From NCBI GenBank assembly GCA_026936335.1, contig JAPMXV010000003.1:310001-374000 (forward strand): a stretch of DNA of 64,000 nucleotides. The letters run 5' to 3'. Both the position numbers and the translations under genes were made by a program. Shown one piece after another: positions 25,356-58,470 of the stretch. The notes below the pieces were generated by a model. That model searched no databases. It was not told where the DNA came from and was given only the letters and a program-made list of their open reading frames with translations. This stretch comes from Mantamonas sphyraenae STR306 (Eukaryota; Protista; CRuMs). The first letter of the stretch is position 1. Each line of letters begins with the position of its first letter.

Positions 25356-28300
25356 CTACAGCCGGCTCAGGTCGTCGTTGATACGTGCGACAACGGCAAG
25401 GACCTGGTCGCGCTTGGCTTCGAGAGGTCGCTTGAGCTTGTTGATCATCCCCTTCTGCTTGGACATCTGCGCCATCTGCTGGCCATAAGTGCTCTCCAGA
25501 GACTGTTTGTGAGTGTCGAGGCGGCCTCGGAAGACCTGTTTGGCCTCCTCGGCCTCCTTTTCCACATCCTGGGCCTCCTTGAGCAACATGGCACACCGTG
25601 TGTCCTTGGCGCCGCTCTTTCCGGCACACCGTGTGGCCGCCTGCTGCTTGCGCTGCACACTGATTTCAAACTTGAGACATTCGGCGTGGTACTGCAGCAT
25701 CAGCTGTTCGTAGGCACCGATCTGAGTCAACATGTCTGCAAACTGCGCCTGCAGCTTGCTGTCCAGTGTCTCCACTTGCTTCAACTTGCCCTCCACTGCC
25801 GTAAGGTTGCCCTTGGCTCCCACCAGCTGAGTTTGCAGTGTTTTCAGCGCAGACAGCGACGCGGCGTCCCGCTTGGGTTCACCCAGGGCAAACACCACAA
25901 AGTCGTTCTTGTCCGTGGGCAGCAGTTTGATCTCCAGTGTCTCCCGACGCCGTCGCTTCTGGCCCGGGCTCAGCTTGTACGCAGCCCTGCCGCTGAGCTC
26001 GCCCGTGGTCTTGGGCGGCGTCTTGGGCTTCTTGGGCTGCTTGGGCTTGGCTTTGGGTTTGGGTTGTGTGGCTTTGGCCTTGGCCTTGGCCTTGGCTTTG
26101 GGTTTGGCCTTGGGACGTGGCTTGGCACGCGGGTTGGCCTTGCGCTTGGGAGGCTCGACGACGGCGATGGTTGGGTCCACGGCGGTGCGTGGCACTGCAT
26201 GCGGTTGTCGCTTGCGGCCTCGTTTGGGCAGGGGTGGCTGTGTTTCGCGCTCGTCGGACATCAACGGCACCTCTTCGCTCTCGATGGCATCCATGCGGTT
26301 GGACTGTTCCGGGTCGGGTTCAATAAAGTCGTCTGCGTCGCTGACGTCGCTGACCACGTCGCGCAACGAACGGCCCACCCCTGCCCGTGTCTTTGCCTTT
26401 GCCTTTGCCTTTGCCATGGTGGCGTCGTGTGGCACGAGATCGTCGTCGTCGCTGACCACGTCTCGCAGGGACTTGCCACGTGGCGTACGTGGCACGAGTT
26501 TGTCGTGGACGTCGTCCTCCACGTCGCTCGGATCGTCGCTCACACGGCCCATCATCGGATCGTCGTCGACGTCGCTCACATCACTCACCACAATGTCGTC
26601 GTCCTTCCGCCGCCGCTGCTGCTGCTGCTGCTTCTGCTTCTGCTGCGCAAGCTTCTGCTTCGTGTTGCGCCCTCGGTCACTCATTGGGTCATCCACAATG
26701 ACCACGTCGTCGCCGCTGACATCGCTGACATCGAGCAATGGATCGGCAGTCATCTTCCGCTCCTTGCTCATCACATCGACGTCGCCATCGTCTTCGTCGC
26801 TGACCACATCGTCGTCTTCGATGCGGTCGTCCTCGTCGCTGACTCCTGCATCCGGATCCTCCTCCATTTCTTCCATCTGTTTCCTGCTGCGGCTGCGTGT
26901 CTCGCGCAGCGTGTCCATGCGACTGCGATGGGGCGGCGGTGCGTCGCCGTCGTCGTCCGACAGCGCCAAATCGCTGATTCCACCATCATTGCGAGTGGAC
27001 CCCTGCGTGGCCTTGGCGGGTCTCTTGTTCTTCTTCTTGTTGCTGTTGTTGTTGTTGGTGGTGGTGGTGACCGAGGGCCCACGCAGCGATTCGTCAGAGG
27101 AGATTTCGTCGTCGCTGACTCCTTCCACATCCGATTTGCTCAGCCGCATGCCGTTGCCTGCGTTCAACTTGCCCATCACAGGCTGCTTGAACATGGCGTC
27201 GTCCTCCACGTCACTCACCCCTCCTCCTCCTCCCCTGGCCCCCTGTTTGGCCTTTGCCGGTCGTACCTCACGCAACAGTTCCTTCAGGGACATCGGTTCG
27301 TCGTCGTCGTCGTCCAGCGATGAAACGCCGTCGTTGCTTTGTGCGCGTGCGCGTGCGCGTCGGCCCTTGGCACCCACCCCCAGGGACACCTTGGGTGCCA
27401 CAGGTGGGTGTCGTCCTTGTTTGATGTTGTTGAATCCACTCCCTTCGTCGCTTTGCATCCCATCGTCTTCGTCCTCTTCGTCGTCCATCATGTCGTTGCG
27501 CATCTCCATGCGTCCACGTGTCGGTGTGCGTTGCTGACGTCGGTTGCCGCTGCCGCCGCTTGCCTCGTCCGAACTCAACCCTTCCAGGGTGTCGCCACCG
27601 GACAGCTGTGCCTCGTCATCCTTCAGATCCAACGGCACACGCTCCGCCTGTCGTTGGAAACGAGAGCGCAGTTCGCGTGAGTCGCCGCCGCCGCCGCCGC
27701 GTCCGCCTGCCCTTTGGCCGACTTCCATGGGTTCCGGGTCGTCCTCCATGTCCTCGTCTCCATACATGTCGTCCCGTTGCATCACTCTGGCCCTTTGTCC
27801 ACCCATGCGTCCTCCTCGTCCGCCCATGTCTGCCTCGCGCACATACACAACACGTGTGGGCTGGTCCCGGTGGTCCATGCGTCTGCCAGCCGGCGCCTCG
27901 TCCCGCACATACCGCATGTTGCGTTCCTCCTCCATGCGACCCCTCCCTCCGCCGCCGCGTGTCTCCATACGATCCTCCACCACGTCGCCATAGCCTCGTC
28001 CACGGCGTGGCTCGTCCCGTGCGTACCCGCGTCCCCAGCCGTCGCCTGCCGCGTCATCATCATCGTTCCCACCTCGCACGTCAAAGCCGTTTCCTCGCCC
28101 GTACCGTACCTGCTCCCCACGCGGCGCCTGTCTACGCTCCGTCTCGGGCGCCTGTTGCCAATAGTCGCGGCCTCCCACGTCGTTGCGTGCATAGCCACCG
28201 TTGCCGTAGCGCTGTTGGTGGTGGCCATTCCATTGCTGCTCACGTCGGCCGCCGCCCCACCTGTCGTCGTCCTGCACCCGCTTCATGGGCGGTCCCCGGT

Positions 28301-28523
28301 CGTCGCGACCGCCCCAACGTGCCTGCTCCGGGTGGGCCTGGCCATAGCCATGGCCGTTGTTGTTGGGTGGGCCTCGGTCATACCGGGGCTGGCCCCACTC
28401 CTGCTGGCGCATCTGCTCGGGCGCCCGTTGATCGTACATGGGCGCGCCACGGCCTCCGCCTCCGCCGTAATACTGCGCATGCGCAAGCAGTACCAATGCT
28501 GCAAGGACAATCAGTCGCAACAT
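25356..28523 (-). CDS. Secreted low-complexity protein: G/R/D-rich region, (V)SD repeats, PKAK tract, C-terminal coiled coil
   Basis: Signal peptide MLRLIVLAALVLLAHA at ATG 28523; about 1055 aa, intronless. Confidence 0.75.
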   Translation of the reverse strand: MLRLIVLAALVLLAHAQYYGGGGGRGAPMYDQRAPEQMRQQEWGQPRYDRGPPNNNGHGYGQAHPEQARWGGRDDRGPPMKRVQDDDRWGGGRREQQWNGHHQQRYGNGGYARNDVGGRDYWQQAPETERRQAPRGEQVRYGRGNGFDVRGGNDDDDAAGDGWGRGYARDEPRRGRGYGDVVEDRMETRGGGGRGRMEEERNMRYVRDEAPAGRRMDHRDQPTRVVYVREADMGGRGGRMGGQRARVMQRDDMYGDEDMEDDPEPMEVGQRAGGRGGGGGDSRELRSRFQRQAERVPLDLKDDEAQLSGGDTLEGLSSDEASGGSGNRRQQRTPTRGRMEMRNDMMDDEEDEDDGMQSDEGSGFNNIKQGRHPPVAPKVSLGVGAKGRRARARAQSNDGVSSLDDDDDEPMSLKELLREVRPAKAKQGARGGGGGVSDVEDDAMFKQPVMGKLNAGNGMRLSKSDVEGVSDDEISSDESLRGPSVTTTTNNNNSNKKKNKRPAKATQGSTRNDGGISDLALSDDDGDAPPPHRSRMDTLRETRSRSRKQMEEMEEDPDAGVSDEDDRIEDDDVVSDEDDGDVDVMSKERKMTADPLLDVSDVSGDDVVIVDDPMSDRGRNTKQKLAQQKQKQQQQQRRRKDDDIVVSDVSDVDDDPMMGRVSDDPSDVEDDVHDKLVPRTPRGKSLRDVVSDDDDLVPHDATMAKAKAKAKTRAGVGRSLRDVVSDVSDADDFIEPDPEQSNRMDAIESEEVPLMSDERETQPPLPKRGRKRQPHAVPRTAVDPTIAVVEPPKRKANPRAKPRPKAKPKAKAKAKAKATQPKPKAKPKQPKKPKTPPKTTGELSGRAAYKLSPGQKRRRRETLEIKLLPTDKNDFVVFALGEPKRDAASLSALKTLQTQLVGAKGNLTAVEGKLKQVETLDSKLQAQFADMLTQIGAYEQLMLQYHAECLKFEISVQRKQQAATRCAGKSGAKDTRCAMLLKEAQDVEKEAEEAKQVFRGRLDTHKQSLESTYGQQMAQMSKQKGMINKLKRPLEAKRDQVLAVVARINDDLSRL

Positions 28524-28571
28524 GTGGCCTTTTTCGATGGCTGCGCGCGTGTGGGTGCAGCGCAAAGTACG

Positions 28572-30422
28572 ATGTCGCAAAAGGATAACAACGAGCATGG
28601 GCCGGTGGGTGAGGAGGCTGAAGCAAAGACGGCAAAGAAACCAGTGCGAAAGGGAGGGAAAATCAAATTGAAGCGAAAGGGAGGCGGACGGAAAAAGGGC
28701 ACGGGTGGTGGGGAAAAGGCGTCTGCGTTGCAGCTGCAATTGCCGGAGGAGGAGGTGCATGTGGTGGTGGTGGGCGCAGGGTACGCAGGGGTGACGGCTG
28801 CGCAACAGTTGCATGCGTACGGTGGGGACAAGTGTCGCGTGACGCTGGTGAGCAACCAGTCCGCAGAACGGTTCTGCTCGCGTCCGAATGTGTTTTTCCG
28901 GCTCAAGCTGGACACAATGGACGGCGACAAGGTGCCGTATGGATACATTGACGAGGACGAGTGGGCAACCAAACACAACGTCAGTCTGCTCGACGCACAG
29001 GTGCTGCGTGTGGATCGGGAGGCACGCACCATCACGTACAGCAGCAACAAGGGACCGTCAGAGGCACAGGAAGCAGACACGCTGGCGTACGACAGACTCG
29101 TGCTGGCGTTGGGAGGGCGGCCACGCGTGTTGGAATGGCAGGTGTGCAGCGAGGCCGAGGTGGACGGCGGCTGGGTGGCCGCGGAGGACGACGCCAACAG
29201 TCGCAACGCAGAGGCACAGCAGACGGTGATTGCAGAGGGCGGTGGCATCGAAGCGTGTGTGAGTGGGTTTGTGGCGTCGATGCTGCCACACGCACCGCTG
29301 CCTGTGTTTCCGGTGCGGAATCCGCAGGAGAGTGTGCTGCTGCACGCGCTGCTGGCCGCTGGGGCACATGTGGTGGTGGTGGGCGGCGGCGCGTTGGCGT
29401 TGGATCTGATCAGTTCGGTGGTGGACGGCGGGTTGCTGGAAGGCGAGGGCCGCGGGACGTTGACGGTGGTGGTGCGGCGTGGAAAGCTGGGATGGCCGCT
29501 GATGCCGCCGGCACTGGCAGAGATGGTGAGTGCACTGCTGGAGGCAAAGCAAGGGCTGCGTGTGTGCTGCGGGGCTGCGGTGGCGTCGTTGGTGACAGAG
29601 GCAGAGGACAGCTCACGGCTGGTCGGGGTGGTGCTGGAGGACGGGACGCAGATTGCCTGCGCGGCTGTGGTGCAGGCAGTGGGGGTCATGTCGAATCATG
29701 AGGCGTTGGTTGTGGAACCGCCGTTGGATGCGAGCGGTGGGTTTATGGTGACGCCGCGCATGCAGAGCATCACGGATGAGGCAGTGTTTGCGGCCGGGGA
29801 CTGCGCGGTGTTTCCGGACGCGTGGAGGGTGTGGAAGGACAGCAGGGGCCACAGGGAGATTGTAGAGGCGATGGAAGCGGATGCGTTGGGGTTGGATAGC
29901 GTGTGGTGGAGCCAGCCAGACGCGACGACAGTGAGGAGGAATTGGTTTTGGGCAAACGAGAGCGGGCGGATGGCGGCAGCAAATGCGTTGGATGGGCGGT
30001 GCAAGGGGGAGGAGGTGGCAGGGACGCCGTTCTTTCAGTCGTTTTTGTTGGCCGGGTTCAATTATACAGAGGTGGGGTTTGGGAAGCCGGAGCTGGGAGG
30101 GGTGTTGTTGGAGGAGAGGGAGCGGTGTGAGGTGGGTGGGGAGGAGTTTGTGGTGTGGGGTGGGGGAGAGGGAGGAGGAGAGGGAGGAGGAGGGGAGGTG
30201 GTGGTGTTGGAGAGGAGTGTGGGGTTGGGGGAGGACGGGGGGCCGACGTACACGAGGTATGTGTTGAGGAGGGTCGGGGGTGGGGAGGAGGGTGGAGGGG
30301 AGGAGTGGGAGTTGGTGGGGGCGGTGGTGTTTAATCGGCACAAGGTGGGGCTGGCGGTGAGGAAGAGGTTGTTGAGGGGGGAGGGGAGGGGAGGGTCGTG
30401 GGCGGAGGCGGTGGGGGTGTGA
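28572..30422 (+). CDS. FAD-dependent pyridine nucleotide-disulphide oxidoreductase (Pyr_redox_2; PYROXD1- or rubredoxin-reductase-like)
   Basis: VVVVGAGYAG, YDRLVLALGGRP, VVVVGGGALAL, VFAAGDCA; Lys-rich N-terminus. Confidence 0.85.
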   Translation: MSQKDNNEHGPVGEEAEAKTAKKPVRKGGKIKLKRKGGGRKKGTGGGEKASALQLQLPEEEVHVVVVGAGYAGVTAAQQLHAYGGDKCRVTLVSNQSAERFCSRPNVFFRLKLDTMDGDKVPYGYIDEDEWATKHNVSLLDAQVLRVDREARTITYSSNKGPSEAQEADTLAYDRLVLALGGRPRVLEWQVCSEAEVDGGWVAAEDDANSRNAEAQQTVIAEGGGIEACVSGFVASMLPHAPLPVFPVRNPQESVLLHALLAAGAHVVVVGGGALALDLISSVVDGGLLEGEGRGTLTVVVRRGKLGWPLMPPALAEMVSALLEAKQGLRVCCGAAVASLVTEAEDSSRLVGVVLEDGTQIACAAVVQAVGVMSNHEALVVEPPLDASGGFMVTPRMQSITDEAVFAAGDCAVFPDAWRVWKDSRGHREIVEAMEADALGLDSVWWSQPDATTVRRNWFWANESGRMAAANALDGRCKGEEVAGTPFFQSFLLAGFNYTEVGFGKPELGGVLLEERERCEVGGEEFVVWGGGEGGGEGGGGEVVVLERSVGLGEDGGPTYTRYVLRRVGGGEEGGGEEWELVGAVVFNRHKVGLAVRKRLLRGEGRGGSWAEAVGV

Positions 30423-30450: not shown

Positions 30451-33400
30451 TCATTGGGTCTTAAAGGTCTCTACGCTGTCAAAGTGAGAGCGGATGCGTC
30501 GGACGTCTTGCGGGTCGACCACACAGATGGATTGTTGGGTCCAGTCGTCTCGGTCCACCTGTAGGTTTGGAAGCGAGAGGGTTTGTGCGTCTTGTCGGAT
30601 GTACAGCACCGCTGTGGGGCATTCGTACGCCGCATCGAGAAAGGCGGTTTGGAGCGGCGTGGGTTGTGCGCCAAACAGGCGCTGGTGCAGGCTTGTGGCA
30701 AATTCAGCTGCGTTTGCGTCGTCTGCTGCCTCGATGTGTCCAATCGCAGCGATGGCAATGTTGCTCTCGACCATAGACTTGGCCATGCGGGAGCTGTTGC
30801 ATCCATTGAGGACAATCAGCTTGCGCGGGTTGGAGAGATCCAACATGAGCTGGAGCCACTCGCCTTTGAGGTGTCCATCATCGATGTAGACACCTTGCAC
30901 GCCCATGTGTGTGCAAAGGTGGACAACGTGGTGCACGGATGTGCGCAGTCGTTGCTTGATCACGTCGATGGGTGCTTGGGCGACTGCGTTTGCGGTGTCC
31001 ACGGTGGAAGGGAGGCTGGTCATCAGGCTGTTCGTTTCGTGGAGGACAGCATGGAGGTCCGCTTTGTCCCCGGTGTACACACAGCCGAGGATGAGCAGCT
31101 TGTCTTCTTGGGGAGGGTGCGATTCGTCAAGTCGCGCCTGGAGTTCTTGCAGCGCGTTGCGAAGGTTGTTCAGCTCATCGGAGTTGCTTGAGGAGGAGGC
31201 CCTGTTGTCCAGTTCGGCGTTTGTTTCGTCCAGGTGAATGCGGAGCGTTGCGGCCTCGGCGAGGGATAAGCTGGAGGCGACTGAGAGCTCGTTGACCCAG
31301 CCGAGGATATCCTTGTACTTTCGACCAAGGAGCTTGATGTTGCAAACGGAGGCGTCCAGTCCCTGTTCCAATGTGTCGACGCGGCTGTTCACACTCGCAA
31401 TGGAGCTTTCGTGCGTGTTCAGGCGATTCTTGAGCTTCCATAGCTCCTCCTCGTCCTTCATCACGCGTCCATACAGCAGGGCCTGTGTCTTCAGGTGGAC
31501 CATGTGCACGTGGCAGGACCCACACTTCTCCTTGTCCACCTCCGCCAACTCCTGCACATCCACACGCAGCTCATGCTGTGCCCAGTCCATCCGCAGCACC
31601 TCCTCCACCTCTCCACTCGCCAAGCACCGGTGACACAGCGGATAGCACCTCAGTCCACTGCCCAGCCCATCACACAGCCCACTCTCCTCTGCCACACTCC
31701 GCACAAGTGCCTCCACTTTGCCCATCGTCTCCACCACATCAAACCAGTCGTCGTCGTCGCTGGCTACCACCACGTCTACATACCGCGTGTGTGGCTCATG
31801 CACAAGAACAATGTGCGGTGCATCCCGGGGCCACACATGCATCCAGTTCAAGCGCACTTGCTCTGGCACCCTCTCCTTTCCCACACCGTCTGGGAACGCC
31901 TCAATCAGCCGCACCTGCACCAGATTGAACAGCGCAGGTGGCAGCATGTGCCACTTCTCTGACTGCCATGCCTCGTCCTGCTGCACCTGCTCCTCATCAT
32001 CTCCTTCACCTTCCTGACCAGTCACCACCCACACAAACCGCCGTCCAATCCGACATGTGTTCTCCGCCATCCACTTCCGAGGCAGCTCCATCTCCATCGT
32101 CCGCAGAAACGGAAACACAAGCGTGTCTTCTCCCACACGTGCACACATCTCCACCTCACACAGCAGCTCCAGCAGCACATCCGCAGCCTCGAGGCTTACG
32201 GAGGTGGAGTATCCCATCAGGCTTGCGTGGATCCTGCCTACTTGCACTCTCAATGCGTCATCCCATTGCACCAGCCCGTGGTGCTTCCCTTCCCCGATCT
32301 GCTTCCCTTTGTCCAGCCCTTGCACCTCTGCACCACTCACAAAACCTCCCATCAGCTTCGCCAGCCACACAGGGTCCAGCACAACCACACCTGACCCTCT
32401 GTGCCACACCACTTCCTGCATGTGGTGCAGTTCCTCCAGCGATAAATGAAAGATCCGCCCACTCATGCTCGGAAAATGCTCCGCCATCTCCTCATTCCCC
32501 TTCACCATCGCCTCCAGCTCCTCCACACGCATCCACGGCTGTTCCATCTCACCACTCTCCCTCAGTCCCTGCACATACTTCTGCAGCTCCACCGTCCCGC
32601 GTGGCACCATCCTCTCCTCTGCCAGTGCCACACTCGCTTCCTCCAGACTGCCCAGCAGCCCATCCACGTTGCCCTTCCACACATCTCCATCCACCACAAA
32701 CACTCCCTTCTCTGCATCCATACGCAGCTGCTCGTACCTCTTGCTCTCCTTCCACCCTTGCACCCACCCTTGCACCATCCCACGTGCCTCTTCCCGATCC
32801 ATCCTCTCCCCCACCTTCACCGTCTCTCCCAGATCTGCATGTGTCACCACAAACCACATCTGCGGCTTCTTCTTCCCTGCCACCTTGCTCGCCACCTTGC
32901 TCGCCACCATGTCCAGCCACACCTCCAGCTCCGCACGTGCTGCCTCCATGTCCACCCTGTGCCCACCTGCCACCGCATCCCACACCACCATCGATGCCAC
33001 AAGCACAAACACCCCGCCCTGGCCCATCAACAGGTACTGGTGGCCCACCCAGTACTCTGCCTGGCCGCCATAGTCACTGATACGCACACGCACATCCCCA
33101 CCCTTCAGATCAAACTCATACACATCCATGCTGTGTGTCGCATCCGTCGTCCTCTCTTTGCAATCCAGCCCCCGCTTCAGCACCTTTTCGAAGATACCCC
33201 AAGTCCACTCTCCCCACGAGGTGCTCCTCTTCATCGTGTCAATCAATGTTGTCTTGCCCTGTCCTCCATGTCCCAACACCTTCCAATTGACCCATTCCCA
33301 CGCAGTGTCCATCCTTCCCAGATACTCCACCACCGCCTGCGCCCCCTTCTTCACCACGAACCCTGGCACATCGTCCAGCGCCTCATCATGCTCCAGCAGC

Positions 33401-36286
33401 AAGTGCTCCAGCTTCCCCAGCTTCGCCATTGCCTGTCTGGGCAGTACCCTGATTCCTGATCGAGTGAGGTCCAGCACGAGCAGATGCTCCCACTGGCCAA
33501 TCTCCTCAGGAAGCTCACTCACCACTTCCTCACCCTCTGCGACAAGACAGAGAGCATGTTTGTCAACACAGTGCAAGCTAGCCAGCTGCTCTGCCAGATC
33601 TTGGGTTGATGTGAACGACACGAGGCCAACTCGCTCGGCCCAAGCACCCAGCATGGCCTTGTGTGTGTGTGGATGTCTTTCAGCAGCGATGGTGAACGCC
33701 ACCACGCTCGGGAAAGGATCATCTCCAACGAAGGCGCCACCAGCAATGAGAACTCTTGCTGTCTCTGTGTGCCCGTTTTGTGCTGCAATGTGCAACGGTG
33801 TCCGTCCGTTCTCCGTTGCCTTGTCCACGTCTGCTCCCCTGTCCAGCAGCATCGTCGCCGTTTCTGTGTGCCCGTTCTCTGCTGCACCGTGCAACGGTGT
33901 CCATTCGTTCTCCGTTGCCTTGTCCACGTCTGCTCCCCTGTCCAGCAGCATCGTCGCCGTTTCTGTGTGCCCGTTCTCTGCTGCACCGTGCAACGGTGTC
34001 CATCCGTTCTCCGTTGCCTTGTCCACGTCTGCTCCCCTGTCCAGCAGCATCGTCGCCGTTTCTGTGTGCCCGATCTCTGCTGCACCGTGCAACGGTGTCC
34101 ATCCGTTCTCCGTTGCCTTGTCCACGTCTGCTCCCCTGTCCAGCAGCATCGTCGCCGTTTCTGTGTGCCCGTTCTCTGCTGCACCGTGCAACGGTGTCCA
34201 TCCGTTCTCCGTTGCCTTGTCCACGTCTGCTCCCCTGTCCAGCAGCATCGTCGCCGTTTCTGTGTGCCCGATCTCTGCTGCACCGTGCAACGGTGTCCAT
34301 CCGTTCTCCGATGCCTTGTCCACGTCTGCTCCCTTCTCCAGCAGCATCGTCACAATCTCTGTGTGCCCGTTCTCTGCTGCACCGTGCAACGGTGTCCATC
34401 CGTTCTTCTGCGCCTTGTCCAACTCTGCTCCCTTCTCCAGCAGCATCGACACAATCTCTGTGTGCCCGTTCTTTGCTGCAATGTACAACGGTGTCCGTCC
34501 GTCCCTCTCCGCCTTGTCCACGTCTGCTCCCTTCTCCAGCAGCATCGTCACAATCTCTGTGTGCCCGTTCTCTGCTGCACCGTGCAACGGTGTCCATCCG
34601 TTCTTCTGCGCCTTGTCCAACTCTGCTCCCTTCTCCAGCAGCATCGTCACAATCTCTGTGTGCCCGTTCTTTGCTGCAATGTACAACGGTGTCCGTCCGT
34701 TCCTCTCCGCCTTGTCCACCCCTGCTTCCTTGTCCAGCAGCATCGACACAATCTCTGTGTGCCCGTTCTCTGCTGCAATGTACAACGGTGTCTGCCCGTA
34801 CTTGTCCGCCTTGTCCACCCCTGCTTCCTTGTCCAGCAGCATCGACACAATCTCTGTGTGCCCGTTCTCTGCTGCAATGTACAACGGTGTCTGCCCGTAC
34901 TTGTCCGCCTTGTCCACCCCTGCTTCCTTGTCCAGCAGCATCGACACAATCTCTGTGTGCCCGTTCTTTGCTGCAATGTACAACGGTGTCTGCCCGTACT
35001 TTGTCCGCCTTGTCCACCCCTGCTTCCTTGTCCAGCAGCATCGACACAATCTCTGTGTGCCCGTTCTTTGCTGCAATGTACAACGGTGTCTGCCCGTCCC
35101 TCTCCGCCTTGTCCAACCCTGCTTCCTTGTCCAGCAGCATCGACACAATCTCTGTGTGCCCGTTCTCTGCTGCAATGTACAACGGTGTCTGCCCGTACTT
35201 GTCCGCCTTGTCCACCCCTGCTTCCTTGTCCAGCAGCATCGACACAATCTCTGTGTGCCCGTTCTTTGCTGCAATGTACAACGGTGTCTGCCCGTCCCTC
35301 TCCGCCTTGTCCAACCCTGCTTCCTTGTCCAGCAGCATCATCACAATCTCTGTGTGCCCGTTCTTTGCTGCAATGTACAACGGTGTCCGTCCGTCCCTCT
35401 CCGCCTTGTCCACCCCTGCTTCCTTGTCCAGCAGCATCGACACAATCTCTGTGTGCCCGTTCTCTGCTGCAATGTACAACGGTGTCTGCCCGTACTTGTC
35501 CGCCTTGTCCACCCCTGCTTCCTTGTCCAGCAGCATCGACACAATCTCTGTGTGCCCGTTCTTTGCTGCAATGTACAACGGTGTCTGCCCGTACTTGTCC
35601 GCCTTGTCCACCCCTGCTTCCTTGTCCAGCAGCATCGACACAATCTCTGTGTGCCCGTTCTTTGCTGCAATGTACAACGGTGTCTGCCCGTACTTGTCCG
35701 CCTTGTCCAACCCTGCTCCCTTGTCCAGCAGCATCGACACAATCTCTGTGTGCCCGTTGTATGCTGCAACGTGCAACGGTGTCCACCCGTCCGCTTCCCC
35801 TTTGTTCACCTCTGCGCCCTTCTCCAGAAGCATCGTCGCCGTTTCTGTGTGCCCGCTGTCTGCTGCAAAGTGCAACGGCGTGGCTTCGTCCTCGTCTGCC
35901 TTGTTCACCTCTGCTCCCTTGTCCAGCAGCATCGACACAATCTCTGTGTGCCCGTTGTATGCTGCAACGTGCAACGGTGTCCACCCGTCCGACCCCCCTT
36001 TGTTCACCTCTGCGCGCTTCTCCAGAAGCATCGTCGCCGTTTCTGTGTGCCCGTTGTACGCTGCAATGTACAACGGTGTCCGTCCGTACTTGTCCGCTTT
36101 AACCACCTCTGCTCCCTTCTCCAACAGCACCTCCACCGTGTCTGTGTGCCCCTCCCGTGCTGCAAGAAACAGCGCAGTCCTCCCATCTCCATCTTGCATC
36201 CCAACATCCACCCCCTCATCCACCAACCTCTGCACCAACTCCACGTTGCCTGCTTCCGCGGCCTCTAAAAGCTCATTTCCGCTCAT
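30451..36286 (-). CDS. Ankyrin-LRR-Roc-COR-coiled coil-CHAT ROCO protein with one +1 frameshift at ~35001 (sequencing error or inactivation)
   Basis: About 26 ankyrin repeats; LRRs (LPEEIGQWEHLLVLDLTRSGIRVLP); Roc motifs GHGGQGKTT, T, DYGGQ, THAD; COR VVLDPVWL; CHAT VVHLCTH...LIVLNGCNS. ORFs 33719..36289 and 30451..35274 join by removing one T at 35000-35002. Confidence 0.85.
33740..36200 (-). repeat. Tandem array of about 25 near-identical 99-bp ankyrin-coding units
   Basis: The core TCTGTGTGCCCG...CAACGGTGTC recurs every 99 bp, and several units are identical. Confidence 0.97.
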
Positions 36287-36488
36287 CACGAGAAACCCTC
36301 TCGACCTCTTTGCCCTGACGTGTCAGCACCCCATCCCCGACCACCCTCACCACCACCCACCACAACCCTCCAAGAGCCTTCAACCTCCCACTCACCCTGT
36401 TCAATTGCATCTGTGGCCGCAACACGGCACCAACAAGTTTCGCCTCCCTCCCCAGCCTCTCTCCACCCCCTCCAACCAACTCCTCTAG

Positions 36489-36622
36489 TTTACTCGCCAA
36501 TGACACCAAGGTACCTCCCAAGCCAGTACGACACCAGCTATCCGTTGGGCTCGTACTCTGCGTGTCCGCTGCCGCAATCCACCTGGAACGGGTCGCCATT
36601 CCATCGGAACACGCACAGATCG
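36489..36622 (-). pseudogene. Duplicated 3'-end fragment of the 58341-60566 gene, with a TGG>TAG stop
   Basis: Encodes FRWNGDPFQVDCGSGHAEYEPNG*LVSYWLGRYLGVIGE*. Confidence 0.9.
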
Positions 36623-36788
36623 CGTCCTCATCCCCATACCCATGGCTCCACCATATACTGTCCACTCCCATCGTGAGTGGTGCACGTGCGACCAGCATCT
36701 CCTCCTCTGACCCCTTCTTCCTTCCCAAGACCCATTCCCCCTCCCCCTCCCACACCACCATCAACCATGGGACACAAAGCTGAGCTCT

Positions 36789-38139
36789 TTAATCGTCCTT
36801 CTTGGATCCACCACCACGCAGACGACCCGTGCGGCGGGCTGCAATCAGACCCACCTTGCGACCGTGCGGCGTGTCACGACGCACCGTCGAAGCATGACCA
36901 ATATGCTGATGGTTACCACCACCATGCGGATGCTCCACCGGGTTCATCGCCACACCACGCACATGCGGCCAGCTGTTGCGCTTCACACGGTACTTGTGGT
37001 ACGCGCGGCCTGCCTTCAGCATCGGCTTGTCCATGCGGCCACCGCCTGCAACAATGCCAATCATCGCACGGCAGTTCGAGTTCACCGTCTTCTTGCTGCC
37101 CGACGGCAGCTTCACACGCGTCGTACCGTTCTCCTTGTGCGAAATAATCGTCGCGTAGTTGCCCGACGCACGTGCGTACTTGCCACGGTCTCCCGGCAGT
37201 GCCTCCACATTGCAGATGATCGTACCCTCGGGGCACGACGACAGCGGCACAATGTTGCCGATCGACAGCGTCGCCTTCTTGCCTGCGTAGATGAACTGGC
37301 CAGTCGAGATGCCCTCCGCAGCAATAAACAGCTCCTTGTCCACCTTGTAGCGGTACGGGTTCTTGAAGTGCACGCGGATCAGAGGTGCTCCACGTCCCGG
37401 GTCGTGCTCCACAGAGCGAACCACTCCCTTCAGGAAGCCGCGGCGCTCACCGTAGTCCAGACGGCGGTGCTTGGCCGCGCCCAGGCGGTGGTGCGTGTGC
37501 GATCTGAACACAGATCCATAACCTTTGCGCTGACCTGTGTGTCGTCGAGTGCAGTGCCGCCGTGGATGTGTGTCAGACTCGTCCGCCTGCGTGTCTGCGT
37601 GCCGATTCTTTCCCGCCCTCTGCGTATTTGCATGCACCTCCACGCTCCACCCACAAAACCGCCCCTCCCACACATGGCTGTGTCGGTCTGGGTGGCGCTG
37701 GACATGACACACGCTGCAGTGTATGCTGGTGTGTCCTGTGTCGCAGTGACCATGATCGTATGTGTCTGCCTGCGTCCCAGTCCCTCGCAACCTGCGCTTG
37801 CAGGAGGGGCTTGAAAAAATGCACGCCGTCCCGCTCACGCTCCGGCCGAGGCACAGGCACAGGGGAAGCAGACAGACACGTGGGACGCACGTGACGCATG
37901 CGCACAGGGTGTTCCATGCGCTGGGTACGTGTGTGTCTGCCGTGTCGTGTCTGCCTCGTCCTGTGTGCGCGTGGCAAGGCGTGCGTTTGTCTCGGCCGAG
38001 GCGACGCGGATCTTGCACAGGCGCCAGCGCGCGGGAGACGCATGGAAACGGGTGGGACGAGGTGTGGACGTGTGGGGTGGGGTGGAGGCATGCAGGGGAA
38101 GGTGGTGTGTGCTCACGTACCTCGGATAGTCTTTCCCAT
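36789..38139 (-). CDS. RPL8: 60S ribosomal protein uL2/L8, copy 1 (exons 38139-38121, 37534-36789)
   Basis: [39 protein letters not shown]; 586-bp intron. Confidence 0.98.
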
Positions 38140-38299
38140 GGTTTGTTGTGTTGCTGGGGGTCGGGCGCACGGGCCATGGGGGTGCATGAGCTCACTCAGT
38201 CCTCCCAGACGTTTCTCCAAGGTGTCCCGTGTGACAGGCGAGACCTCTCCCGTCTTGGGTGGATGCATGCATGCGCGCCCATGGAACCAAACACGGACA

Positions 38300-40126: not shown

Positions 40127-40190
40127 AATGTACAGTGAGCTCATGCACCCCCATGGCCCGTGCGCCCGACCCCCAGCAACACAACAAACC

Positions 40191-41541
40191 ATGGGAAAGA
40201 CTATCCGAGGTACGTGAGCACACACCACCTTCTCCTGCATGCCTCCACTCCACCCCACACGTCCACACCTCGTCCCACCCGTTTCCATGCGTCTCCCGCG
40301 CGCTGGCGCCTGTGCAAGATCCGCGTCGCCTCGGCCGAGACAAACGCACACCTTGCCACGCGCACACAGGACGAGGCAGACACGACACGGCAGACACACA
40401 CGTACCCAGCGCATGGAACACCCTGTGCGCATCCGTCACGTGCGTCCCACGTGTCTGTCTGCTTCCCCTGTGCCTGTGCCTCGGTCGGAGCGTGAGCGGG
40501 ACGGCGTGCATTTTTTCAAGCCCCTCCTGCAAGCGCAGGTTGCGAGGGACTGGGACGCAAGCAGACACACACGGACATGGTCGTTGCGACACAGGACACA
40601 CCAGCATACACTGCAGCGTGTGTCATGTCCAGCGACGCCCAGGCCGACACAGCCATGTGTGGGAGGGGCGGTTTTGTGGGTGGAGCGTGGAGGTGCATGC
40701 AAATACGCAGAGGGCGGGAAAGAATCGGCACGCAGACACGCACACGCACGAGTCTGACACACATCCACGGCGGCACTGCACTCGACGACACACAGGTCAG
40801 CGCAAAGGTTATGGATCTGTGTTCAGATCGCACACGCACCACCGCCTGGGCGCGGCCAAGCACCGCCGCCTGGACTACGGTGAGCGCCGCGGCTTCCTGA
40901 AGGGAGTGGTTCGCTCTGTGGAGCACGACCCGGGACGCGGAGCACCTCTGATCCGCGTGCACTTCAAGAACCCGTACCGCTACAAGGTGGACAAGGAGCT
41001 GTTTATTGCTGCGGAGGGCATCTCGACTGGCCAGTTCATCTACGCAGGCAAGAAGGCGACGCTGTCGATCGGCAACATTGTGCCGCTGTCGTCGTGCCCC
41101 GAGGGTACGATCATCTGCAATGTGGAGGCACTGCCGGGAGACCGTGGCAAGTACGCACGTGCGTCGGGCAACTACGCGACGATTATTTCGCACAAGGAGA
41201 ACGGTACGACGCGTGTGAAGCTGCCGTCGGGCAGCAAGAAGACGGTGAACTCGAACTGCCGTGCGATGATTGGCATTGTTGCAGGCGGTGGCCGCATGGA
41301 CAAGCCGATGCTGAAGGCAGGCCGCGCGTACCACAAGTACCGTGTGAAGCGCAACAGCTGGCCGCATGTGCGTGGTGTGGCGATGAACCCGGTGGAGCAT
41401 CCGCATGGTGGTGGTAACCATCAGCATATTGGTCATGCTTCGACGGTGCGTCGTGACACGCCGCACGGTCGCAAGGTGGGACTGATTGCAGCCCGCCGCA
41501 CGGGTCGTCTGCGTGGTGGTGGATCCAAGAAGGACGATTAA
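40191..41541 (+). CDS. RPL8: 60S ribosomal protein uL2/L8, copy 2 (exons 40191-40209, 40796-41541)
   Basis: Protein identical to copy 1. Confidence 0.98.
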
Positions 41542-41709
41542 AGAGCTCAGCTTTGTGTCCCATGGTTGATGGTGATGTGGGAGGGAGGGGGGATTGGTCT
41601 TGGGGAAGGAAGAACGGTCTGGAGGAGGAGATGATGGTCGCACGTGCACCACTCACCATAGGGAGTGGACAGCGTGTGGCCAGAACCATGGGTATGGGGA
41701 TGCGAACGC

Positions 41710-41843
41710 GATCTGTGCATGTTCCGATGGACAAAGGCGACCCGTTCCAGGTGGATTGCGGCAGCGGACACGCAGAGTACGAGCCCAACGGATGGCTGGT
41801 GTCGTACTGGCTTGGGAGGTACCTTGGTGTCATTGGCGAGTAA
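41710..41843 (+). pseudogene. Second duplicated 3'-end fragment of the 58341-60566 gene, frameshifted (GGACAAAGGC vs GGAATGGC)
   Basis: Encodes GDPFQVDCGSGHAEYEPNGWLVSYWLGRYLGVIGE*. Confidence 0.9.
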
Positions 41844-42150
41844 ACCAGACGTGTTCACCCTCCTATCATGAACATGATCCCAACTCCACCATCCATCCAC
41901 CCATCCTTGCCATCCTTCCCACCTTCTTCCACCTTCTTCCCCACCCCCCCCACACCCACCGCATCCACCCATCCACCGAATTCCCACCCTCCATTCCATT
42001 CTTCCAATCGGCCTCCGCCCCAACTCCGACTCCCCGCTCTTTCGCTCTTTCGCACTTTCGTGCTCCGCCGAATTCAGCGTTCCCGCCCTGAAAAGCGCCC
42101 GCTCGCCGATAGCGCCCACAGCACCAGGAAAACACACACACACACACAAA

Positions 42151-43470
<1,320 letters not shown>

Positions 43471-43579
43471 TCTGTTGATCTTTCCCCCCCCCAAAAGAAA
43501 TGAAAAACGCAAACGTCGCTATCAACACAACCCCTACCCCAATCCAACCCAACCCAACCCCCCCCCCACCCTCCAGTCC

Positions 43580-56659: not shown

Positions 56660-58470
<1,811 letters not shown>

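Follow-up and report, generated by a model that had tools for sequence, protein, structure and literature searches.

What does a single-celled eukaryote do with a protein in which the GTPase switch of the ROCO family is joined to a protease of the caspase clan? This question is raised by a gene of Mantamonas sphyraenae STR306, a deep-branching marine flagellate of the CRuMs, which branch near the base of Amorphea. The gene, in the following called the ROCO-CHAT gene, is located on the minus strand (36286-30451) of a 64-kb window, which is the whole stretch of DNA analyzed here (contig JAPMXV010000003.1, positions 310,001 to 374,000) and to which all coordinates refer. It starts with an ATG at 36286, ends with a stop codon at 30453-30451, does not require an intron, and encodes 25 ankyrins, two to three leucine-rich repeats (LRRs), Roc, COR, a Cys cluster, a coiled coil, and a CHAT domain in this order. 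In the assembly, the open reading frame (ORF) consists of two overlapping frames, which were searched separately and would yield about 1,944 residues if one extra base is removed. From the domain order, the fold and dyad of the protease domain, the selection on Roc-COR, and the exchange of heads and tails within the gene family, we infer that the gene belongs to a fast-evolving ROCO family and encodes a cytoplasmic sensor-switch-protease, which most likely, with a probability of about 60%, serves the surveillance of non-self or damage and thus immunity.

The CHAT domain is encoded at 31101-30600 and is matched by Pfam with an E value of 7e-5, just short of the cut-off. Its putative catalytic dyad consists of a His at 30909-30907 and a Cys at 30801-30799. 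Both residues are invariant in 20 paralogous CHAT domains at 21-30% identity, as is the preceding Leu-Asn. An alignment-based AlphaFold2 (AF2) model of the domain reached a pLDDT of 77 and a pTM of 0.81, while single-sequence AF2 gave a pLDDT of only 35. With this model, the top match of Foldseek was SAVED-CHAT (E 3e-10), which was also ranked first by VIA (Z 19.8, root-mean-square deviation 2.3, 174 residues), followed by legumain, metacaspases, caspases, and separase. Profile comparison with SAVED-CHAT resulted in an E value of 3e-17, with His and Cys in register with the catalytic H375 and C422 of PDB 8TL0. According to the model, the domain has the caspase-hemoglobinase fold and belongs to the CHAT/caspase clan (CD); it has the His-Cys dyad of this clan and is predicted to be proteolytically active. 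In the whole genome, Pfam Peptidase_C14 had one match, below cut-off, at a site on contig C49 that is also matched by CHAT, which may point to few classical metacaspases alongside an expanded CHAT family.

The Roc GTPase (33300-32610) has intact motifs G1 to G4 in the translation, with the P-loop at 33273-33247, the switch-I Thr at 33138, G3 at 33075-33061, and G4 at 32844-32833. At 33132, switch-I reads Thr-His-Ser; at the third position, the paralogues have a consensus Gly that is invariant in 25 bacterial Roc domains. COR (32607-31650), comprising COR-A and COR-B, follows directly. The Pfam models for Roc and COR remained below cut-off on this gene; a profile of the paralogues matches Roc-COR-A of LRRK2 (E 5e-7) and bacterial Roc (HH probability 98%). 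The COR part alone was assigned to COR-A/COR-B clusters of the ESM Atlas with 0.97, at a recognition value of 2162 that lies under the guide of 2300, and all ten best family matches were COR; COR-B was weakly matched in direct profile comparison. Roc-COR can also be aligned with protein P0002 of the choanoflagellate Salpingoeca urceolata (26% identity, 450 columns), and ratios of non-synonymous to synonymous substitutions (dN/dS) of 0.27-0.36 indicate purifying selection. In the adjacent Cys cluster (31647-31513), two Cys are invariant among paralogues. It probably belongs to the end of COR-B because the equivalent position is occupied by four invariant Cys in 25 bacterial Roc-COR proteins, and it likely binds zinc. 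With G1-G4 in Roc and COR directly behind it, the gene is a member of the ROCO family, for which a GTP cycle is predicted. A kinase of the LRRK type does not follow COR, and its place is taken by the coiled coil and CHAT. A STAND ATPase (NB-ARC/NACHT), as required for NLR receptors, is not present in the protein, in which the switch is a Roc GTPase, so that it resembles an NLR in its working mode at most. A preliminary description of this DNA, made from the sequence alone, had named an intronless coding sequence with this domain order, including Roc and COR, and had regarded the lack of a caspase/CHAT fold or of a His-Cys dyad as fatal to its interpretation. Every part was found in its place, fold and dyad included; the frame break in the assembly was left unstressed.

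About 20 relatives of the Roc-COR core are encoded in the genome. Thirteen close paralogues, which are 58-91% identical to one another across Roc-COR, end after the coil and do not have a CHAT domain; split CHAT genes were not found beside them within the fetched 10-kb loci. Six distant relatives (35-38% identity) have CHAT, one encoded on contig C6 and the other five on C68, where four form a tandem array, and with the ROCO-CHAT gene there are seven Roc-COR-CHAT genes. Another group of about 13 CHAT copies constitutes an NLR clade; the six of these that were scanned or read all have the order CHAT-NB-ARC-TPR. On C68 (L035:7079-10000 and L020), a gene of this kind, whose TPR array is long and near-identical, and a Roc-COR-CHAT gene are arranged tail to tail. 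One Roc-COR core is thus combined with different heads, i.e. about 4-14 ankyrins in paralogues, RI-type LRRs on C77 and C34, and 25 ankyrins in the ROCO-CHAT gene, and with different tails, i.e. several coil types or a coil with CHAT. The preliminary description had proposed a search for paralogues with other effectors; a multi-copy family does exist, but its effectors are CHAT or none, and no other type was seen.

The ROCO-CHAT gene itself has a mosaic structure. At the DNA level, it is 77-87% identical to the close CHAT-less paralogues, and with nearly all of them this identity breaks off at 31435-31465. Across this seam, around 31450, the proteins drop from about 85% to about 35% identity, and third codon positions change from a positive to a negative G/C skew. 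The part preceding the seam has a dS of 0.3-0.4; in the part that follows, third positions have reached saturation. The coiled-coil linker (31446-31123) is homologous to the tails of the CHAT-less paralogues but has long diverged from them, with 33-46% protein identity and 26-35% identity at third positions to most of these tails. Coil types also disagree with Roc-COR similarity, as paralogues C52a and C52b are 91% identical in Roc-COR and 49% in the coil. In the simplest reading of these sequences, the gene would be a recombinant, in which the 5' part of a young CHAT-less clade was joined at about 31450 to an old coil-CHAT tail, and CHAT would be old in the family, with one clade having lost it before expanding. 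The Roc-COR tree leaves gain and loss of CHAT undecided and resolves no bacterial or choanoflagellate link; since its branches are long, no transfer is claimed. It was ruled out that CHAT had recently been copied from one of the known paralogues, as the tail DNA is single-copy in the genome, identity to the closest CHAT is 30%, and the domain groups with other Roc-linked CHATs (SH-aLRT 91). A further recombination product was observed on C52 (L026:3240-4907), where a TPR array and a fragment of COR-B form one in-frame fusion just downstream of a CHAT-less paralogue. On the same contig, a CHAT piece among the nearest to this CHAT (L003, C52:299103) is separated by about 6 kb from a piece of COR-B (C52:292401) and is probably part of an interrupted gene.

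A search of 1.84 billion representatives resulted in five weak matches, and no orthologue above about 29% identity was found in other eukaryotes. One of the five is an Ank-Roc-COR-CHAT protein of S. urceolata, a species with two such paralogues (EukProt EP00051 P024870 and P013700), in which His and Cys are retained. They have the same domain order and provide the best full-length Roc-COR match, but they are transcriptome predictions with few ankyrins, no LRR or coil was seen in them, identity is 26%, and their CHAT falls outside the Mantamonas CHAT group in a small tree. The sole bacterial match with this layout is the metagenomic LRR-Roc-COR-CHAT protein P0004, which aligns with the ROCO-CHAT gene in LRR-Roc and in CHAT (E 8e-9 each) and is encoded 20 bp upstream of a bacterial gasdermin gene. 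The bacterial Roc-COR-CHAT genes at L041:8095-13300 and L042 are followed by tandem genes with FGE-sulfatase (FGS) domains; at L042, a reverse transcriptase gene is also located upstream.

A repeat-Roc-COR-CHAT order with the same dyad is known from bacteria, where a gasdermin-cleaving protease of Runella has been labeled Roc-COR-CHAT (bioRxiv 10.1101/2021.06.07.447441, fig. S8 legend). The ROCO-CHAT gene shares this order but differs by its eukaryotic host, by 25 ankyrins ahead of a short LRR, by the coiled coil between COR and CHAT, by the lack of a gasdermin neighbor and of any gasdermin with two queries, and by a very distant sequence. Bacterial LRR-AP-GTPase-COR counter-invader systems comprise at least 24 C-terminal domains, including caspase (PMC8195603). 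With these, the Mantamonas family has in common a variable sensor, a constant Roc-COR, an exchangeable C-terminus, and many paralogues per genome; unlike in those systems, which were described for prokaryotes, the C-terminus here was seen to carry CHAT or no effector, and the type of sensor itself is swapped. SAVED-CHAT (PDB 8TL0), with a cA3-binding SAVED sensor, is encoded in a CRISPR locus, is activated by oligomerization, and has PCaspase as its substrate (bioRxiv 10.1101/2023.06.23.546230). It is closest to the protease domain in structure and profile, with the dyad in register, but it has no GTPase and senses with SAVED. ROCOs of brown algae have been proposed as immune receptors, one group having a C-terminal peptidase of another class (PMC11378527, PMC3341825). 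This peptidase is IPR009003, and CHAT and caspase are absent from the main text of PMC11378527. Expanded, repeat-variable ROCOs and, in one group, a C-terminal peptidase are thus found in both eukaryotes, but brown algal genes are intron-rich and shuffle LRR exons, while the Mantamonas family recombines without introns. IPR009003 belongs to the trypsin-like clan. The Ank-LRR-Roc-COR order is that of LRRK1/2, and Roc-COR-A matches LRRK2; unlike LRRK1/2, DAPK1, and MFHAS1, the protein has no kinase, WD40, or death domain but a protease output, and it is not encoded by a conserved single-copy gene. The ROCO-CHAT gene therefore represents a eukaryotic version of a sensor-protease layout known from bacteria rather than a new kind of system, and the view that its architecture had not been described does not hold in view of the Runella and LRR-AP-GTPase-COR-caspase systems. 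As far as the searches reach, including a literature search of incomplete coverage that returned no report of a eukaryotic Roc-COR-CHAT, the eukaryotic CHAT version (seven copies here, also present in S. urceolata) and the recombining family are unreported.

CHAT proteases are activated by assembly and have narrow substrates such as gasdermin and PCaspase. In the proposed mechanism, binding of a ligand to the ankyrin surface would shift the nucleotide state of Roc. A COR-mediated change between monomer and dimer could then bring CHAT domains together via the coiled coil, as oligomerization activates SAVED-CHAT; alternatively, it could free CHAT from autoinhibition, similar to CtRoco, which is monomeric when GTP-bound (PMC11052575), so that the switch might work by monomerization or by dimerization. 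CHAT would subsequently cleave a single dedicated target, either a pore-former or another protease, and the infected cell would die or be arrested as a result. The sensor-switch-protease logic had already been suggested in the preliminary description, and it gains from the caspase-clan fold, the invariant dyad, the multi-copy variable family, and the presence of the same CHAT on NB-ARC-TPR receptors. The common single-copy housekeeping gene that would have spoken against it was not encountered.

Several points weigh against an immune protease. The neighbors of the gene are the housekeeping genes for RPL8 and a FAD oxidoreductase; the locus is not a defense island, and no gasdermin gene adjoins it. 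In the genome, no gasdermin was detected by Pfam PF04598 or by one bacterial gasdermin query, both of which are insensitive, and two collection scans for gasdermins were blank. None is annotated beside four further bacterial Roc-COR-CHAT genes, two of which are on short contigs. Across the family, ankyrin variation is highest at hairpin and first-helix positions (column entropy, 69 repeats), which is only consistent with ligand binding, as it is usual for any ankyrin array. Eukaryotic ROCOs also act in trafficking and signaling, and activity, ligand, and substrate of the protein are predictions. Finally, 22 of 23 ankyrin units aligned at the DNA level are exactly 99 nt long, and one has 100 nt; between repeats 12 and 13 it contains a run of three A at 35002-35000 in place of two in the other units, which breaks the frame in the assembly. 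This frame break could be either an assembly error or a real lesion.

If the additional base is real, this copy would be a recent pseudogene or null allele, its product would be 12 ankyrins and an off-frame tail ending at a stop at 33719, and the function of the family would be carried by other copies. Besides the break itself, this unlikely alternative would fit with three of the 13 close paralogues (C56b, C52b, and C76) being broken outside the repeats, as in birth-and-death families. It would also fit with run X4, a probable RNA library judging from its size and patchy cover, in which one 185-nt contig was found on the single-copy coil and none on CHAT; this contig is weak evidence for expression. 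The break, on the other hand, is a change from two to three A within near-identical 99-nt units of a PacBio RS II assembly, which short reads cannot polish uniquely, and about 1,940 codons have no second lesion, all motifs intact, and a dN/dS of about 0.3. This genome was assembled with FALCON (25.06 Mb, 59% GC), is diploid, and has mainly single-exon genes (PMC10492846); the assembly comprises 25,061,354 bases in 78 contigs. From the end of COR through the coil to CHAT (about 30500-31600), single contigs from each of three DNA runs, which come from the same study as the assembly and are not an independent sample, have zero mismatches, so that misassembly of the CHAT tail was ruled out.

An active protease could also serve signaling outside immunity, replacing the kinase of LRRK or Dictyostelium ROCOs in the regulation of trafficking, cytoskeleton, or life cycle. 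Characterized eukaryotic ROCOs do serve such processes, the same clan includes separase, which has a housekeeping role, and the genomic setting would suit this function. It is nevertheless improbable given the lineage-specific expansion, the swapped heads and tails and the broken copies, the lack of an orthologue above about 29% identity in other eukaryotes, and the CHAT family shared with NB-ARC-TPR proteins. A similarly doubtful extension of the immune reading is an inflammasome-like network based on ROCOs, in which the 13 CHAT-less paralogues would act as variable sensors or dominant-negative tuners, pairing via Roc-COR, which is 60-86% identical, with the one protease-bearing member of their clade, i.e. 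this gene, which would cleave a divergent gasdermin-like pore-former. Together with the choanoflagellate copies, such a network, if it existed, would position a Roc-COR-CHAT death module of the bacterial type deep within the lineage that led to animals. A CHAT domain that lacks catalysis and serves as a scaffold, with signaling through assembly alone, is very improbable: the customary Gly-His-Gly context is replaced by Thr-His-Met in this gene, but no variation in His, Cys, or the preceding Leu-Asn is seen over 20 deeply diverged paralogues.

As a sensor-switch-protease for surveillance, the product would be a concrete candidate for invader sensing and regulated death in single-celled eukaryotes and a counterpart of the tested bacterial gasdermin-activating protease. 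A ROCO protein with a simple protease output could also provide a direct read-out for whether GTP-driven monomerization or dimerization turns on effectors such as LRRK2. The family further diversifies its receptors by intronless recombination of heads and tails, a route distinct from that of brown algal ROCOs, which shuffle exons.

The remaining parts of the gene are the start codon with an N-cap or degenerate first ankyrin (36286-36185), with which paralogues start similarly, the 25 ankyrins with a 99-nt period (36184-33720; Pfam, unit alignment, and column entropy), two full and one degenerate LRR (33516-33370; Pfam LRR_14 with E 5e-6, and LRR_8), a helix linking LRR and Roc (33369-33310) that aligns with the same linker of P0004, and a short C-terminal tail with the stop codon (30599-30451) taken from the translation. 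NCBIfam and PADLOC returned nothing specific for the gene. The 190 bp upstream of its start had no match in the upstream DNA of the fetched paralogues. The RPL8 gene is present as an inverted duplication (36667-38196 and 40134-41662, arms of 1,459 nt, 98%) with a B-box/MATH (TRIM37-like) gene in between, and an ARF GTPase gene is likewise duplicated in inverted orientation (41733-43486 and 56716-58451, 99% identical, 13 kb apart). The duplicated block ends at 36478-36622, with about 190 bp between it and the downstream start of the ROCO gene, and the ROCO gene occupies the place of ARF in the mirror copy. A long ORF at 25356-28976 encodes a signal-peptide-like segment as well as Gly/Arg-rich and acidic repeats and overlaps the 5' part of the oxidoreductase ORF on the opposite strand.

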